From Glycera tridactyla (Eukaryota): a DNA stretch of 64,000 nucleotides. The stretch lies in assembly GCA_965644265.1 (NCBI GenBank), contig OZ286470.1, forward strand, positions 9,920,001 to 9,984,000, written 5' to 3'. Within the stretch, counting starts at the first letter, position 1, and each line of letters starts with the position of its first letter. The position numbers and the translations under genes were made by a program. Below, in pieces: positions 25,754-34,730 of the stretch. The notes beneath the pieces were generated by a model, which saw nothing but the letters and a program-made list of their open reading frames with translations, made no database searches and had not been told where the DNA came from.

Positions 25754-25862
25754 GATGAGATGATGGCCGAAGCACACTGATGTGCGGATAATCCGGGGAG
25801 AGCATTTTGTCATTTTCTACTTGGTTCGATCGCATCGATCAGCAGCTTTCCAGCACGAGAGC

Positions 25863-28800
25863 ATGGATAAAGGTTCTAAGAAGGGTGGGAGAAGAAAGTT
25901 GAATCGTGGAAGCCTCTTCAACACGCTAGGAATCCGATCGTTTTTTGCTAACTTGGGGAAGTCTGAGACGGGCAATATTGGGTTTGTTTACCCCGTCTCC
26001 AACGCTACAACGACAGCTTCCGCTACCGCTACCGGCACACCCGTGCTTTTCACCCCACCGGGCACCCGCAACAGAGTTACCCCCGACATGGTCTCAGTCA
26101 AGCCAGGTACGAGTGCTCAATCCTCGCACACGCCTTCACGCGTAGGCTCGTCTGCCCCATCTGCTCAGGGAAGTCCTGCAAACTTTGCTGACAAATGTCC
26201 CGCTAACAGTAATATTGTGATCAACAAATCGGCGCTTCTTGCATTACGAGTAGATGTTCCTGAGTCAATATCAAGCTGTGCAAATTTAAGTAGTGACGCC
26301 CACCCTCCCTTACCGAACATCTGCAAAAATGATGCTACGACGCTGTTACCGGAAGATGTTCGGCAGTTATCCCAACTGAGATGTTTGAAAAGTGATGATC
26401 CAAAATTATTATCTTCACCCAGTGTTATTGTTAAAAAGTTGGATTTTGATAGCCTACCAATTCCGTGCTCGAACACTGATGAGGGCATCAAGAGTGATGC
26501 CAGGCATAATACAACTGTTCCCCCAGTTATTACCTTTCTACAGGAGTCTGTGTTAAATGACAACCAGCCGTTTCACTTCGAAGCCACGAGTTCCCAATAT
26601 GCAAGTGGTGATCTGTCTGGCTACGCCTCTGATAGCAGTGTACTAATCATTGACACCCCTCAGCGCCGCCGGAAAACGTGGAAATCGTCACCATGTTTGA
26701 CTGACGATATGTATGATCCCTATGACAAATTGCTTCGCCCAATCACTACGGTTTCTCTGACTCGGACACAATCTGATTATTTCACAACTGAATCATTGCC
26801 AACCCCAGAACGCAAACGTGCCAGAGGTTCCCCTGACTTTGGAAGCGAGTCAAGGAGCCCAAAACGCCTAAACCGCGACAAAGCCACGCCCCCTCTGACA
26901 CAATCTAGTTCAGATCTCTCAAATGGTACATTGGTCACGGTTGAGTCACCTCTAGTTCCCCTCGACGGGGTCAACAAGCAAGCTCGGAATGAATCAGCGG
27001 TAGACTGTAATGAACTCAAGGCTGTAAATGACACGGGTATCCCCCATAATGACTCGTCCCCCGACAACACTGACCCTTCGGTCAGCACCGGAAGCCCGCC
27101 AGATGACGCCAATAACATGTCTGTCGATGAACCGATCAATCCGCTATCGCCGACAGACCTGTCTAATCATTCCGCCCCACCAGTGTCGACATCTCCGAAT
27201 CTATTACAGTCTGGTTCTAGGTGTCCAACACAAAATGAAGTTCCTACCCTAACAAATTCTGTACAGCAGCAACAGGAGCAGCAACCTTCGAAGCTGCTGA
27301 CAAGCGTGTCCACTCAAGCAGATCTAACTGACTCAATATCTGACTCAGTCCTACGTGCATTAAAAGTTGATATGCGACGTGAACTCCAAGACTCTTTGTA
27401 TGCCGTAATCAAGTCAGAAACTTCATCAGTCGAAAACCGGATTAAATCAGACACTCGTCGTGAATTCGAGAAATTTGTCATCAACACAGTCAAGGCAGAG
27501 TTTGCAACATCAGAAACCCGCATCAAAGACTCTGCCCGCCGTGAAGCACAAGAGTCTCTGTTTGGTGTTATTAAATCAGAAACCCTCATGGCAGAAGGTC
27601 GCATAAAGGAAAACCTACTCACCGAAGCAACCAAGGACATAGCTCGAATTGAACACCAGTTAGTGCAACTTCAGAGGGAAGTCAAATCTCTTCTGACCAC
27701 GCCGAAATATACGCCACCCCCCCAACCTCAGCAACCTGACAAAAGCTACCCTGAAGGCGAAGCTTCCCCGTTGGATCCGACGGTCAAAGAGAACAACAAC
27801 AGTCTCGAGGTCTCATTCCATAATTTTGTGACAAAAACTGAGAAGAGACTTGAAAAGACAGATTCACGTTTAGATGGTTTAGAGATGTCTGACAGAATGG
27901 ACTGTCTGATTGTGGAAGGGGCCGATATAGATCCTCACTTCTCAATTACCGAAAATATATTATATGCATTGAATGGCAGATGTGGGTTTAATCTGACCAA
28001 TTCTGATGTTATCAAATGTTCCTTTGTCGGAAGACATGGTCGCAACAAGCGTCCTGTGTTGATAAAATTCAAGGATGTAGATGTGAAAAGAGCAATCATG
28101 AAGAAAAAAGGCACTTTTATTGGCTCTAAGATATTTGTTAAAGAATATCTGATTTCAAACCAGACATCCCTATTTTATCAGGCACGGGAAGCTAAGCGCA
28201 GTGGCATTTTTGTCAAGGTATGGACTCATGATGGGGTGATTTGGGGTACCAGAAGTCATGTCAGTCTTCCCGAGGTAATCACAACTGATTTACTTGAGAC
28301 ATACCGCAAACAGTCACACAGTGAACACAAACAGCCTGACACAAGCAATAATGTGTCATCGGAACATACACCCAATACCAGAGTAGAACCACTCACCACG
28401 GCTGCTGCGCAGCCACCGGGTCAACATCAAACACCCGCCCTCGCACAGCAACCACCACCCTCAAGCGACACTCAATCATCAATACATCATCACAATCACA
28501 ACCAGAACCTAGGATACCAGCATGCTCACAACCTCACTCATGGGAACCATCAGGGATCATTTCAATGGAATCATCAATACAATCTGAATCAAGCCAGCCA
28601 TCTGAGACCGAATGCCCTACCCTTCTATCCACATCAGCCCCCGCCTTTACAGACCCACTCCTTCAGTCAGCTGAGACCACCTTTCTGGCAGTATAGCAAT
28701 AACCAACAATATAATCCAAACAATTACCAGCAACAGTTTCGATCTGTACATACCCAGCACATCAATGGCGCTTACCAACCTCATCAGCAACCACTCATGA

Positions 28801-28871
28801 ACAATCTGACGAATAACTATACAAACAGTCCTGCTGTCAATTCATGGAATGATAGTAATAATCAATCTTGA
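25863..28871 (+). CDS. LINE ORF1 protein (~1002 aa from first ATG): long disordered N-terminus, coiled coil, L1-ORF1-like RRM/CTD, Q/N/H-rich tail
   Basis: DRMDCLIVEG...RPVLIKFKD...KIFVKEYL...LFYQARE.K......VWT.DG.IW is the RRM+CTD pattern of L1/CR1-type ORF1p. The frame is uninterrupted (open from 25782). Confidence 0.8.
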   Translation: MDKGSKKGGRRKLNRGSLFNTLGIRSFFANLGKSETGNIGFVYPVSNATTTASATATGTPVLFTPPGTRNRVTPDMVSVKPGTSAQSSHTPSRVGSSAPSAQGSPANFADKCPANSNIVINKSALLALRVDVPESISSCANLSSDAHPPLPNICKNDATTLLPEDVRQLSQLRCLKSDDPKLLSSPSVIVKKLDFDSLPIPCSNTDEGIKSDARHNTTVPPVITFLQESVLNDNQPFHFEATSSQYASGDLSGYASDSSVLIIDTPQRRRKTWKSSPCLTDDMYDPYDKLLRPITTVSLTRTQSDYFTTESLPTPERKRARGSPDFGSESRSPKRLNRDKATPPLTQSSSDLSNGTLVTVESPLVPLDGVNKQARNESAVDCNELKAVNDTGIPHNDSSPDNTDPSVSTGSPPDDANNMSVDEPINPLSPTDLSNHSAPPVSTSPNLLQSGSRCPTQNEVPTLTNSVQQQQEQQPSKLLTSVSTQADLTDSISDSVLRALKVDMRRELQDSLYAVIKSETSSVENRIKSDTRREFEKFVINTVKAEFATSETRIKDSARREAQESLFGVIKSETLMAEGRIKENLLTEATKDIARIEHQLVQLQREVKSLLTTPKYTPPPQPQQPDKSYPEGEASPLDPTVKENNNSLEVSFHNFVTKTEKRLEKTDSRLDGLEMSDRMDCLIVEGADIDPHFSITENILYALNGRCGFNLTNSDVIKCSFVGRHGRNKRPVLIKFKDVDVKRAIMKKKGTFIGSKIFVKEYLISNQTSLFYQAREAKRSGIFVKVWTHDGVIWGTRSHVSLPEVITTDLLETYRKQSHSEHKQPDTSNNVSSEHTPNTRVEPLTTAAAQPPGQHQTPALAQQPPPSSDTQSSIHHHNHNQNLGYQHAHNLTHGNHQGSFQWNHQYNLNQASHLRPNALPFYPHQPPPLQTHSFSQLRPPFWQYSNNQQYNPNNYQQQFRSVHTQHINGAYQPHQQPLMNNLTNNYTNSPAVNSWNDSNNQS

Positions 28872-31409
28872 AATAGACTGTTCTAAGCACTGCCAACGTA
28901 AAGACACCTACGTCTCAGCTACATTCACCTTGAATGACCCCACCACTTCAAACAACACCACGATATCTAAACACATGCAGGCACCCCAACACAACCTTGA
29001 CCAGAAATCGACACATGTACATTGCACACGCCAATAGCTCAACGCTGTCTTATTTCTGTATATGTCAATATCACGGATCATGGTAACCATTTTAAAAATG
29101 CTTATATGGGCGCAGAATGTTGGCATTTGAATTCGACATGAACCCTCTTTTGGCCATAGGTTTATTTGAATATCATGCAAATTGTCGTGTGATTACATGA
29201 ATTCCCGCTTTTTCAGTTACACTTTTCCTGCCCGCTGCTTTTCATGGTTGTCATAACTGCTCAAGTGTGACAGGCCTGCGTGCCTTAATCACCCGCCGCA
29301 GACGTGTTTGACTTGACTGAGTTGTTGTTTTCTATCCTGTGTTTTGCACTAGTTTGTAATTTCTCGGGTTTCTGTTATAAGGAACATATAGACATCAGTG
29401 CATATCCAAGTAACTTAATATGACTCGAAATTGTTTATTTCAGTGTACCTATGACTCATCGACTATGAATGATTTCTCGAATCAGAGTGTGTATGTCCAT
29501 GGGGTGAGAGCGCCCAGACTTTTCTCTCAGCTGTTTCTCTATCTTCCATCTCCTCTCCTCTTTCACCGCATGATGATCTCACAACTCTGGTGGGAGCTCC
29601 CAAGCTTCTCACACCTATTTCTCTAATCTTGTCTCCTCTCTTCTTTCTCTGCATGATGATTTCATAACCATCTGCGTAGATAGAAACTATATTTTGCAAT
29701 ACGCATACACCTTTCTCACCAGGACAAATTATCAAGTTGAATTATCAGGATAGACGTGGTTAGTTATTATTAGACCCGGGTTAGCAACACGTCATGCAAC
29801 TTCGTAGGCGGTTCCAGATCCTACTTAGGCAAAGAAAGCAATATATGTGTAAATGGGGACCTCATCTCTGAAAGACTGACGGATTGCAGGGTGCCCATAT
29901 GTAAACAATATGGTTGCTTCGATATGATTTATATATATATTTTTGACACGATGTATATAGTTTGAATGATTTATTACTTATCTTAGTAGAATGACTGATT
30001 GAATCTTGACTCACTGAACATTTTCTTAATGTCCGTATGTTAACTGTATGATCACTTTGACTCGACTTATATAATTTCAACAACGTTTATATTGTTTTAT
30101 TGTACGATTGATTGAACCTCATGAGAGTATGCATGTGTGTGTGCCTCTGGTTTGGTCCTTTTACATGACTCATGCTCTACTATAGCGACTACTTGAATGT
30201 ACGTGATTATTCACAGCGTTCACCAGCCCTAACCTACTGCATATCACACGGTTCCAGAATAAGAACCTGGCCTCTATCGGGGGTGAAATTATACTGCAGA
30301 CGTGGGATTGTGGACCTTCATTGGATGTCATATCACGTCATTAGGATATTTTTGTACCAATTTTGTGCATGCTTTTATGTTGCTGCCGATAAAATTGTTG
30401 CATACCTGCTGTCTCTTTTGTCGGTCATTGGATCTATCCCGAAACCTGTAACGCCCATTCTGCTTAAATGTATATGCATATGTTCTTGTTGCAAATGTTA
30501 GTTGATTGGTAATAGTACCCGATTTGATCAAACTATTTGTTTGAGGACCCAACCTTAGGCCATCGCGCATTCTTTTACGGTGATTGTATATGGCCAGTTA
30601 CCCTATCTTCTTTGTCAGGAATACTCACGGCATTTCTTCTCATCCCAAATGACGATTGACGAATACGAACTATAGCTTGAAACCATCCCCGATAAGCTGT
30701 ATGTAAACACCACGTCAAAGGTGCATATGTCTCATGATCAGGTCTAAGTGAGAGTATTTGCAGTACATTATCTTATCCATCTATCATTTAGGGATCAGCC
30801 CAATTGCAGCAGATCTCTCATTTTTGCTACTGCGTATAGTCTAGCCTCCCTTAACGGTGACAGCATGTAACCAGTCTCGAGATACCTATATGAGGATCTC
30901 CTCGTATATTTCATCCATTCTCGCTATGACGGCCGTAAACTAGGAGCCATGTGTGAGAAAGCTCCGACAGACATATATGTATACAAATACGAAAGTGCTG
31001 TATGATATCCCATTTGCTCTACAAAACTACTGCATCAAGGTTGACAATAGCGCGTGGACATCCCACGCCTGAGGATGAAACACACCACCTACTGGATTTA
31101 CTCTGAATCTTTATTGCAACCAACAATCGCTATAATCATATCAATCACTGTGTATTTCTCCACCTTTTGAATGCCCATATGTTAACTAACATCATGCTGT
31201 CGTTTGAACCCTTTTAAACCCACACTTCGAAGCATACGGGATGTGAACCATCCTAATAAGTCTACATGTGTTTTATTTGTTGTCTTGCCCTCTCATATTG
31301 TATGTTATTAATCGAATTGGTAGGACAAAGTGGGAATGTCTCTTTATAAGCTCTCCCCAGAACCTCACTTACCGATCATCCACTTCATAATACTCATTTC
31401 ATCCAAACC

Positions 31410-34384
31410 ATGGCACCTAGGAAGGACAAGTTCGTCTTTCCGCTTGCAAGCTGTTTTGATGATAAGGACTATTGTTCGATGTCCTTATCAAACTTGCCAG
31501 GTATAGCAAATGCCTGTCTCAACATCCAAAGTTTGACACGTAAGATAGATGATGTTTCGAGCCTTCTAGCTTGCAGCAAAGTTGACATTTTATGCATCTG
31601 TGAAACATTCTTGAATTCATCCGTGAGTGACGAAGAACTTCATATCCCAGGATATTGTTTTCTCAGGTTCGACCGCACATCTGAGAGTGGCAAACTGTGT
31701 GGTGGAGGTCTTGGTGTGTATTACCAATCGCAATATGATATAGTTGTCAATGAAGACCTATGTAAATGTACCCCTGACATAGAAATCATGAGCTTCACTC
31801 TCAACCTGTATAGAGCCCGTCCAACCCACTACTTTTTAGTCTACAGGCCCCCAGATGGGTGTGTCACCAATGGGTTATCACTACTAGAATCTCTTATGTT
31901 AGACCCCTCCCTGAAGCTCCCGGCTGACGTCATCTTGCTTGGTGACACCAACATTTACACCCTCAAACCGGAGTGTCACAAGTCGAAATCTTATGCACTC
32001 TTTTGTGAAAAAGTAGGTGTCACTCATCTGATTGGTAGTCCGACACGAATACATCAAAATGGTGCAACATGTATTGACCATCTTGCAGTGAGCAGGCCCG
32101 AGTACTACTGGCGCTCAGGGATATTAGACCCATGTCTTAGCGACCATCACCTCATCTTCGTGGCTCGCAATCGTCAAAAACTCTCATCTGTCAAACATGA
32201 AATATCTTATAGATCATTTAAGAATTTAATGCCTGTACTTTTACTGACGAACTTGCGTCATCTGACTGGAGTCCTGTTTTTGGAAGTAGTGACGTCGAGA
32301 TAGCTGCCACTAATTTCACTACCACTTTCGTGAGTCTCATGAACAAAAATGCTCCTAAGAAAAACCTGCTGGCAAAAAGTGATCACCAGCCATGGGTGAC
32401 ACCTGAATATGTAGCAGCGATCGCATACTGTGAATCCAGATCAAAACGCAATAACGAACACCCGACTGACTACAACCGCGCTATGAAACGTGAATCCTTT
32501 CGCATCAAAACGAGGATGAAGAAACGCTTGAAACGCTCGTACATTTCTAATTGCTTACAAGATGCTGGAAATGATAGTAAGAAACTATGGAAGGAGATCA
32601 AGAGATTTTGGCCCTTAACACAGAAAGCACCAGTTACACCAAGCAGCGATAGTGATGACCAAGAGTCAATCCCGATTGAAGAGCAGGTCAATGAATATTT
32701 CACCAGCGTGGGTGCCCGACTGGCAGAGCAAATAAGTGCAGCGGGCGAGACTGACTTCCGTGAGCGAGATAATCGTACTAGACGTAATAATATTGATATC
32801 TCTCCGTCCTTCTCCCTAGTAGAAGTCTCACCCTCTGACGTCAGTGATTTCATTCTTGAGCTGAGCAACTCCTCTGCCTCAGGCATGGATGAAATCACAA
32901 GTTTCTTCCTGAAGATATCCTCTCAGGTGATTAGCCCCATATTAGCACACGTCTTTAATCTATCGCTCAGGCAAAATATCTTCCCAGCCAACTGGAAGGA
33001 AGCTGTAGTCACTATAATACACAAAGGTGGATCTTCAAAGGACTTTGGTAATTTTCGTCCGATTTCCCTATTGCCTGTCCTTGGGAAGCTCCTGGAGAAA
33101 ATTGTCCACGCTCAAATTACAAAATTTGTAAATGCACACGACATCCTTAACTCGGCTCAATTTGGGTTCAGGAAGGGGTTCTCCACTGGGTCGTGCCTCG
33201 TCAGCCTTCTGGATAAGATTTACCAGGGGGCTGACGAGGGTCGCCTCGCTGGAGTCCTCTTCCTGGACCTGAAAAAAGCCTTCGACACTGTCGATCACAA
33301 GCTTTTGATATCTGAACTTGAACACCTTGGCTTCAGTGACTCTTCTCTCTCATGGTTTATCTCATACCTCACCGACAGATCCCAAGCGACCAAGATAGGC
33401 AATTCAATCTCCACGCAGCTTCCGATTAAATATGGCGTACCCCAGGGGTCTATTCTTGGACCCCTCCTTTTTATACTCTATGTCAATGGTCTGAGTAACT
33501 GCCTGGAACACAGCTTCCCTTTCCTATATGCCGACGACACAGCACTACTTGTACTTGGTAAAAACTCTGATGAGGTTGAGGCAAAGTTAAACCTTGACCT
33601 AGCCCTGATCTCGGATTGGTTCAAAAGTAGAAGACTGACGTTAAATCTATGCAAATCGAATGTCATGGTATTTGGAACTGACCAGCGTCTCCGTAGATGC
33701 AGACAACTTGATATTAAATATAATGGCCAATCAGTTCATCAAGTTGACTGCTACAAATATCTGGGCATCCAACTAGATCCTGTTCTGTCTTTTAAGAACC
33801 ATGTTGATTATCTCGTGAAAAAAGTGAATTTTAGAAGGCGAGCGCTGTATTACCTCCGCCCCTCTATCAGCAGAGAAACTGCCCTTTTTCTGTACAATAA
33901 CCTCATTGACCCACTGTATACCTACAATGATTATGTGTATGATGCATGCTCGGAGACTCTAAGCAGTCGGCTCCAAGTGTCGCAGAACCGCTGCCTGAGT
34001 GTCGTTTGCGAGCAGGGGTGGGTTTACTCTGCCAGTGATTTACATTCGACACTTGGAACCGCCTATCTGAAAGAAACCCGTCGCTCGAATACCATCCTTG
34101 AGGTGTATCGTACTATGCATAATGCCAATGTACCCACATCTATTCTATTCTCATTAACAACACCGAGAGAAGAAGGTCCTGCCACCAGAGCTAACAGCCT
34201 GGTAAAGCAAAATAATATGTTGGACAAACCTTTCACACATCTCAAGTTTAGCGACGGGAATCTTCGGATCAGAGGTGCCAAGTACTGGAACTCGTCCAGT
34301 ACAGATATCAGAACATGTGACAGTCTGTCTGGCCTCAAACGTCTGTTGAAATCTTGCCAGCCCCAAACTCGACCAAACGCATGA
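31410..34384 (+). CDS. LINE ORF2 (APE endonuclease + reverse transcriptase), single -1 frameshift at ~32225-32227; ~991 aa if restored
   Basis: LNIQSL, ICETFL, YRPP, LLGDTN, SPTR, IDH, SDH (APE). FPANWK, FRPISLL, QFGFR, FLDLKKAFDTVDH, VPQGSILGP, YADD, KYLG (RT). Adding one T gives YRSFKNFNACTFTDELASSDWSPVF. Strong Kozak AACCATGG. Confidence 0.9.
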
Positions 34385-34631: not shown

Positions 34632-34728
34632 TTGCATAAGCACCTAATATGACCCATCTGGGTCAAGTGTAAAACTGTACTTCACTTCTTATGCAATAAA
34701 CATTTTCTGATTCTGATTCTGATTCTGA
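34632..34728 (+). promoter_or_regulatory. LINE 3'-terminal stem-loop, poly(A) signal and microsatellite tail
   Basis: GCATAAG/CTTATGC outer stem enclosing TGACCC/GGGTCA and AAGTG/CACTT hairpins, followed by AATAAA and (TTCTGA)4. Confidence 0.6.
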
Positions 34729-34730
34729 TG

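Follow-up and report, generated by a model that had tools for sequence, protein, structure and literature searches.

A PAM2-like peptide in the predicted disordered tail of a LINE ORF1 protein from Glycera tridactyla, a candidate ligand of poly(A)-binding protein

In human long interspersed nuclear element 1 (LINE-1, or L1), PABPC1, a cytoplasmic protein binding poly(A) (PABP, poly(A)-binding protein), is part of the ribonucleoprotein particles (RNPs), and a direct contact has been proposed between PIE, a linker element of the ORF2 protein (ORF2p), and RRM1 (Ghanim et al. 2025, PMC7617806), a contact suggested to act in cis-preference and to protect the poly(A) tail (PMC7617806). Cellular proteins such as Paip2, ataxin-2, Paip1 and eRF3 are ligands of the MLLE (PABC) domain of PABPC1 through canonical PAM2 motifs of 12 residues in disordered regions. 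Here we analyze a PAM2-like peptide, SHLRPNALPFYP, in the predicted disordered tail of the ORF1 protein (ORF1p) of a LINE in Glycera tridactyla, located in a stretch of 64,000 nucleotides (GenBank assembly GCA_965644265.1, contig OZ286470.1, positions 9,920,001 to 9,984,000, forward strand) that we call the window and whose numbering we use throughout. Like the human PIE, it would be part of a LINE-encoded protein proposed to hold PABPC directly; PIE differs in that it is a longer, helical linker segment, lies in ORF2p and targets RRM1 (PMC7617806), whereas the candidate in the window is a short motif of ORF1p with MLLE as its putative target, in an element with a genomic repeat tail instead of poly(A). 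The original prediction, made from the sequence, knew of no description of such a motif in a CR1-group ORF1, and our reading of the literature agrees with this, in that no description of PAM2 in an ORF1p was found, including in work that names PAM2, MLLE and retrotransposons. We put the chance that this peptide is a PAM2-type motif docking the ORF1p tail to the MLLE domain of cytoplasmic PABP just short of even, i.e., we treat it as a plausible but unproven ligand. In support of this reading, the peptide matches PAM2 in sequence, its tail is predicted to be disordered, its host protein is modeled with the ORF1p fold, and a PAM2-type island is conserved in the tails of another ORF1p clade.

Translation of the window showed that the peptide is encoded where it had been predicted, in frame with a long ORF1, with a stop codon present on the opposite strand of the same interval:

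28596..28631, + strand: PAM2-like peptide SHLRPNALPFYP, aa 939-950 of ORF1, in frame
25782..28871 (including the stop codon), + strand: ORF1, 1029 aa, longest open reading frame (ORF), GTG start

The first ATG of ORF1, at position 25863 (MDKGSKK...), is the likely start. In ORF1 numbering, the residues of interest are Leu941, Arg942, Pro943, Ala945, Phe948 and Pro950. The frame that encodes the tail is the sole open one over 28317-28868, with 0 stops where each of the other five has 6-22, and the probability of no stop over this interval is ~5e-4 (estimated from base composition). A tblastn search found no second ORF1 copy in the 64-kb window.

The refined, structure-based definition of PAM2 is --Phi-(P/V)-A--F-P (Kozlov & Gehring 2010, PMC2854688), which we scanned as [LFP].[PV].A..F.P. 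In PAM2 motifs, Leu is usual at position 3 and Pro at position 12, Ala is invariant at position 7, and positions 6 and 8 are exposed (PMC2854688); position 10, the main determinant, is always Phe (PMC2854688), with Trp in PAM2w; and position 4 is a conserved Asn, less often Ser, that stabilizes a beta-turn (PMC2854688). Grimm et al. give the consensus as LNxxAxEFxP. The window peptide (Ser1, L3, R4, P5, N6, A7, L8, P9, F10, Y11 and P12) satisfies every specified position of the refined definition, i.e., L3, P5, A7, F10 and P12. The original prediction that all key positions match stands for L3, P5, N6, A7, F10 and P12, and breaks down at position 4, where Arg takes the place of Asn or Ser. By chance, and given the amino-acid composition, [LFP].[PV].A..F.P is expected 0.0008 times in the 184-aa tail and 0.0037 times in the whole of ORF1, and a scan of the window's six frames (~128,000 codons) gave no match other than the peptide. 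The match is in excess of what ORF1's own composition predicts, with the caveat that scanning many windows for many motifs yields occasional matches of this rarity. Among canonical ligands, the PAM2 of ataxin-2 (STLNPNAKEFNP) has Ser1, Leu3, Pro5, Asn6, Ala7, Phe10 and Pro12 in common with the window peptide, the PAM2 of Paip1 has F-Y-P in common with it, and PAM2-N of eRF3 shares Pro9 (PMC2854688). Unlike these canonical motifs, the window peptide has Arg at position 4 and no Glu at position 9, and belongs to a retrotransposon protein. An ALIX-type YP(x)nL reading was also considered and rejected, as its spacing is too long.

The protein that carries the peptide was modeled with AlphaFold2 over ORF1 aa 640-1029, using 42 relatives, which gave the following layout:

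27777..27896, + strand: coiled-coil helix adjoining the RRM, aa 666-705; helix 27-66 of the AlphaFold2 model, predicted local distance difference test score (pLDDT) >90; match to the human L1 ORF1p trimer
27903..28145, + strand: RRM-like domain, aa 708-788; strands and helices 69-149 of the model; Foldseek matches 2ykp, 2yko and 2w7a; 327 phmmer relatives align
28155..28325, + strand: domain like the C-terminal domain (CTD) of ORF1p, aa 792-848; AlphaFold2 model, Foldseek and phmmer alignments
28326..28868, + strand: Q/N/H/P-rich tail, predicted disordered, aa 849-1029, 180 aa; pLDDT mostly <50, composition, open frame

The core of long helix, RRM-like domain and small C-terminal domain has a pLDDT >90 and superposes on the human LINE-1 ORF1p trimer in Foldseek (2ykp, 2yko and 2ykq, E 3e-7 to 3e-5), with 2ykp_A as the best match (E 2.9e-7, TM by target 0.61). 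On the basis of this model, ORF1 is predicted to be an L1-type (type II) ORF1p with coiled coil, RRM and CTD, a layout already reported from the L1, CR1, L2 and R1 clades (PMC4120745). ORF1 is also upstream of an ORF2 with apurinic-type endonuclease (APE) and reverse transcriptase (RT) on the same strand, and these downstream ORFs together with the Foldseek match bear out the earlier identification of the host protein as a LINE ORF1p. The likeness to type II ORF1p (PMC4120745; PDB 2ykp) therefore consists of the predicted fold and the position of the gene upstream of an APE-RT ORF2; unlike type II ORF1p, the window ORF1 has no Pfam Transposase_22 (PF02994) match, and no Pfam family at all was found in it at E up to 1. 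Compared to the type II literature, it has two extras that are not discussed there, an N-terminal extension of ~650 aa and a 180-aa Q/N-rich C-terminal tail. A host protein that, going by its modeled fold, packages RNA as human L1 ORF1p does counts in favor of the PAM2 reading.

Several further observations concern the ORF1 protein and its fold. An Atlas shape search recovered the ORF1 fold from clusters of molluscs, arthropods, chordates and annelids, and Pfam Baculo_FP_2nd is present in some of these clusters. The ORF1 core is fused to a NADAR-type domain (PF08719) in two relatives (P0136 and P0152), and PHD fusions occur in Atlas clusters. In the window, the coiled coil is preceded by an S/T/P-rich N-terminal extension of ~600 aa (25863-27700, ORF1 aa 28-640) with no family match, the helical part of which contains internally repeated segments (…IKSETSSVENRIKSDTRREFE… and …IKSETLMAEGRIKENL…).

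Of the 184 residues of the tail itself (aa 846-1029), 27 are Q, 27 are N, 21 are P, 19 are H and 16 are aromatic, and the pLDDT of the tail is ~40-50 across aa 850-1029, mostly <50, as against >90 in the core. The AlphaFold2 prediction supports the earlier placement of the motif in a disordered tail, and a disordered region, as the usual setting for such motifs, counts for the PAM2 reading. After the same core, similarly composed tails occur in relatives P0002, P0003, P0007, P0008, P0044 and P0127, which indicates that a long disordered tail is a trait of this family. A tandem-repeat origin of the tail was rejected, since TRF finds no such repeats. The tails of P0003, P0044, P0007 and P0008 end in a common N-[RQ]-F-x-x-L (NRFDCL, NQFGAL, NRFEVL), which is missing from the window ORF1.

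We consider it quite possible, though somewhat under an even chance, that the peptide is a look-alike with no binding consequence, lying in a prion-like low-complexity tail whose role, if any, would be the formation of condensates or RNP granules through aromatic stickers (F, Y and W) among Q/N/P/H spacers. A tail with 29% Q+N and 16 aromatics in 184 residues favors such an explanation, as does the large number of windows and motifs screened, which makes rare matches expected somewhere. The low expected count given above for the tail, which would be far lower with Ser1 and Asn6 counted, speaks against it, as does the tail frame, which is still fully open.

Conserved islands of PAM2 type in other ORF1p tails bear on the same question, because they argue that such proteins use this motif. 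Two proteins, P0022 (GGLNAGASSFAPS) and P0107 (SELNIDASVFKPV), contain the canonical LN..A..F.P in their C-terminal tails, and a third, P0072, which is 46% identical to P0022, contains GQSPNAPQFAPR at the same place in the tail; the core of P0107 is only 29% identical to that of P0022. Downstream of P0022 there are an ORF of 235 aa and an RT gene, and we class P0022 as a LINE ORF1 for this reason; the ORF2 of its element (L001) is 30% identical to the window ORF2. Alignment of the three tails shows an island [LQ][NS]..A..F.P in which Ala7, Phe10 and Pro12 are invariant, with the remainder having drifted. The two canonical matches compare to an expectation of 0.025 in 152 whole proteins and 0.002 in 4,860 tail residues; the ELM-style pattern also gave two, where 0.144 are expected in the 152 proteins and 0.018 in the tails; reversed patterns gave 0 matches, and a looser PAM2 score gave 7 matches, compared to 2.8 in shuffles. 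At least 40 residues follow the core in 38 of 151 representatives, and the island is present in 3 of those 38. The Pfam PAM2 model gives the P0107 peptide 12.8 bits, which falls short of its 20-bit cut-off. As the three proteins are related, the island in P0022, P0072 and P0107 probably has one origin and has been retained, and retention is the pattern expected of a working motif. These proteins, from marine and other metagenome contigs, belong to the same core fold family as the window ORF1 (phmmer E 1e-9 to 1e-5) and, like it, have a disordered C-terminal tail that holds a PAM2-type peptide. They differ from it in that core identity is ~26%, in that their position 4 is canonical (Asn or Ser), and in an STP.P that is missing in the window. 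An (A)STP.P block is invariant downstream of the island, at aa 445-453 of P0022, aa 386-392 of P0072 and aa 301-309 of P0107.

An exhaustive phmmer search returned 327 relatives, all aligned at aa 680-835 and with a best identity of 40%; these were core-domain relatives only, and the search found no family copies of the window ORF1. The refined PAM2 pattern occurs in none of the best 150 of the 327 relatives plus two more. Queried with the C-terminal region of ORF1, with a piece of 473 aa and with a profile of 42 sequences, word-index protein searches returned either nothing or three distant matches, low-complexity words having swamped the candidates, and an exact look-up of the ORF1 sequence found it not on record. 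A search for related loci gave two distant metagenome loci (one of which, L003, is the contig of P0004) and none in viral or prokaryotic contigs. Sequencing runs gave only three weak matches, with contigs that break off at 28584, which is 12 nt short of the motif.

A number of these results weigh against the PAM2 reading. No other copy of the window ORF1 family was retrieved in these searches. The nearest tail-bearing relatives, P0003 and P0044 (~27% identity), are partly similar across the motif region (H-[LI]..., PHQP.P) and have A-x-F, not A-x-x-F, from which it follows that the motif was no ancestral feature of this group. The P0022 clade that conserves an island is a different lineage from the window ORF1, and its island probably one origin. 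Of the conservation in related ORF1s for which the original prediction called, the spacing is absent in P0003 and P0044, and a PAM2-type island is conserved in a separate clade. Arg942 occupies position 4, where Asn or Ser is usual, and an ELM-style PAM2 pattern rejects the peptide because of this residue. The Pfam scan proposed with the original prediction, once run, reported no match for the peptide: at E up to 10, PF07145 (PAM2) is silent on ORF1, on the tail and on a piece of 30 aa. P, N and aromatic residues are abundant in the tail, and the first residues of the motif belong to a short internal repeat whose second copy is without the N-A-L codons and so has no Ala7. The non-canonical Arg, the silence of Pfam and the lack of conserved spacing in P0003 and P0044 also favor a chance look-alike, as does the split ORF2 of the window copy, which may be decaying. 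Taken together, the original interpretation is partly supported.

The internal repeat also raises the possibility of a different linear motif. A second, degenerate unit follows the PAM2-like peptide:

28665..28688, + strand: degenerate unit SQLRPPFW, 23 codons downstream of the motif

The two units arise from a 15-nt in-frame direct repeat (28595-28609 and 28664-28678, 87% identity) and read SHLRP...PFY and SQLRP.PFW, which may point to a unit of another type or may be due to chance. In such a case the functional element would be the repeated S-x-L-R-P...P-F-[YW], or an overlapping L-P-x-Y or PPP stretch, and its partner a WW/SH3-type domain or an importin rather than MLLE. The in-frame spacing of the two copies is in line with this, as is the occurrence of LRP twice in a tail that holds just 4 Arg, and LPFY agrees with LPxY, the loose form of WW ligands. 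Two-copy 15-nt repeats are, however, often due to chance, [LP]P.Y is expected ~0.15 times in the tail (a composition estimate) and so carries little weight, and none of the relatives found shares the unit, and we regard this explanation as improbable.

The element that carries ORF1 continues downstream with an interrupted ORF2 and a repeat end:

31410..32303, + strand: ORF2 part 1, apurinic-type endonuclease, Pfam Exo_endo_phos E 6.8e-9
32330..34384, + strand: ORF2 part 2, reverse transcriptase, Pfam RVT_1 E 1.5e-34, in another frame than part 1
34695-34700, + strand: AATAAA, followed at 34705-34729 by ~4 copies of TTCTGA; 3' end, read directly, where the element terminates

The change of frame between endonuclease and RT at 32303-32330 interrupts ORF2 in the window copy, in which ORF1 is fully open. 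Direct reading of the sequence found no genomic poly(A) at the 3' end of the element. The nearest feature-based clusters of the RT are named 'jockey-like', and from these neighbors and the (TTCTGA)n 3' tail the element looks to be a CR1/L2-like LINE of the Jockey superfamily, a fair label and one consistent with the CR1-group assignment originally made. From the ORF1 stop to the first ORF2 ATG there is a gap of ~2.5 kb (28872-31409) without a + strand ORF of at least 110 aa; in the P0022 element, the gap after ORF1 is ~770 nt.

If the peptide is a PAM2-type ligand, a trimeric ORF1p would present three copies of it, and these would bind, with avidity, PABPs arrayed along the poly(A) tail of the RNA polymerase II transcript of the element itself. 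This transcript is probably polyadenylated, since AATAAA is located just before the 3' repeat. The likely benefits would be the loading of ORF1p onto its own mRNA, and the shielding of this mRNA through competition with the PAM2 users PAN3, TOB, GW182, Paip2 and eRF3. Because genomic copies end in (TTCTGA)n, the PABP contact would fall at the mRNA/RNP stage and not at an L1-like poly(A)-primed reverse transcription, a mechanism that is not directly transferable to an element ending in a hexamer repeat. Both MLLE binding and a role in cis-preference are steps that we infer. A described protein with a comparable arrangement is Unkempt, whose PAM2-like motif has one deviation from the ELM pattern and whose deletion of this motif nevertheless releases PABPC (10.1101/2023.09.20.558714). 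Unkempt also combines RNA binding, coiled-coil self-association and a disordered region (10.1101/2023.09.20.558714); it differs from the window ORF1p in being a cellular regulator and a dimer, not a trimer, and in that its binding is backed by experiment (10.1101/2023.09.20.558714). A broader proposal, which we hold to be speculative and rather unlikely, is that several non-L1 LINE lineages have repeatedly gained PAM2 mimics in disordered ORF1p tails, in which case the trimer would act as a three-pronged MLLE clamp on its own mRNA, would form a second route to PABP apart from the ORF2p PIE-RRM1 contact, and could displace deadenylase adaptors or eRF3.

Work on how LINE proteins select their own mRNA, i.e., cis-preference, and on how PABP joins LINE RNPs has so far dealt mainly with human L1, for which the ORF2p-RRM1 contact is proposed. 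With a conserved PAM2-type island in a second clade of ORF1 proteins, the idea of an ORF1p PAM2 can be tested on more than one protein. If true, such a motif would be a simple handle on these questions, open to mutation and to peptide-binding tests, also for LINEs whose priming does not use poly(A), and retrotransposons would join the users or mimics of a host motif that governs translation, deadenylation and termination.
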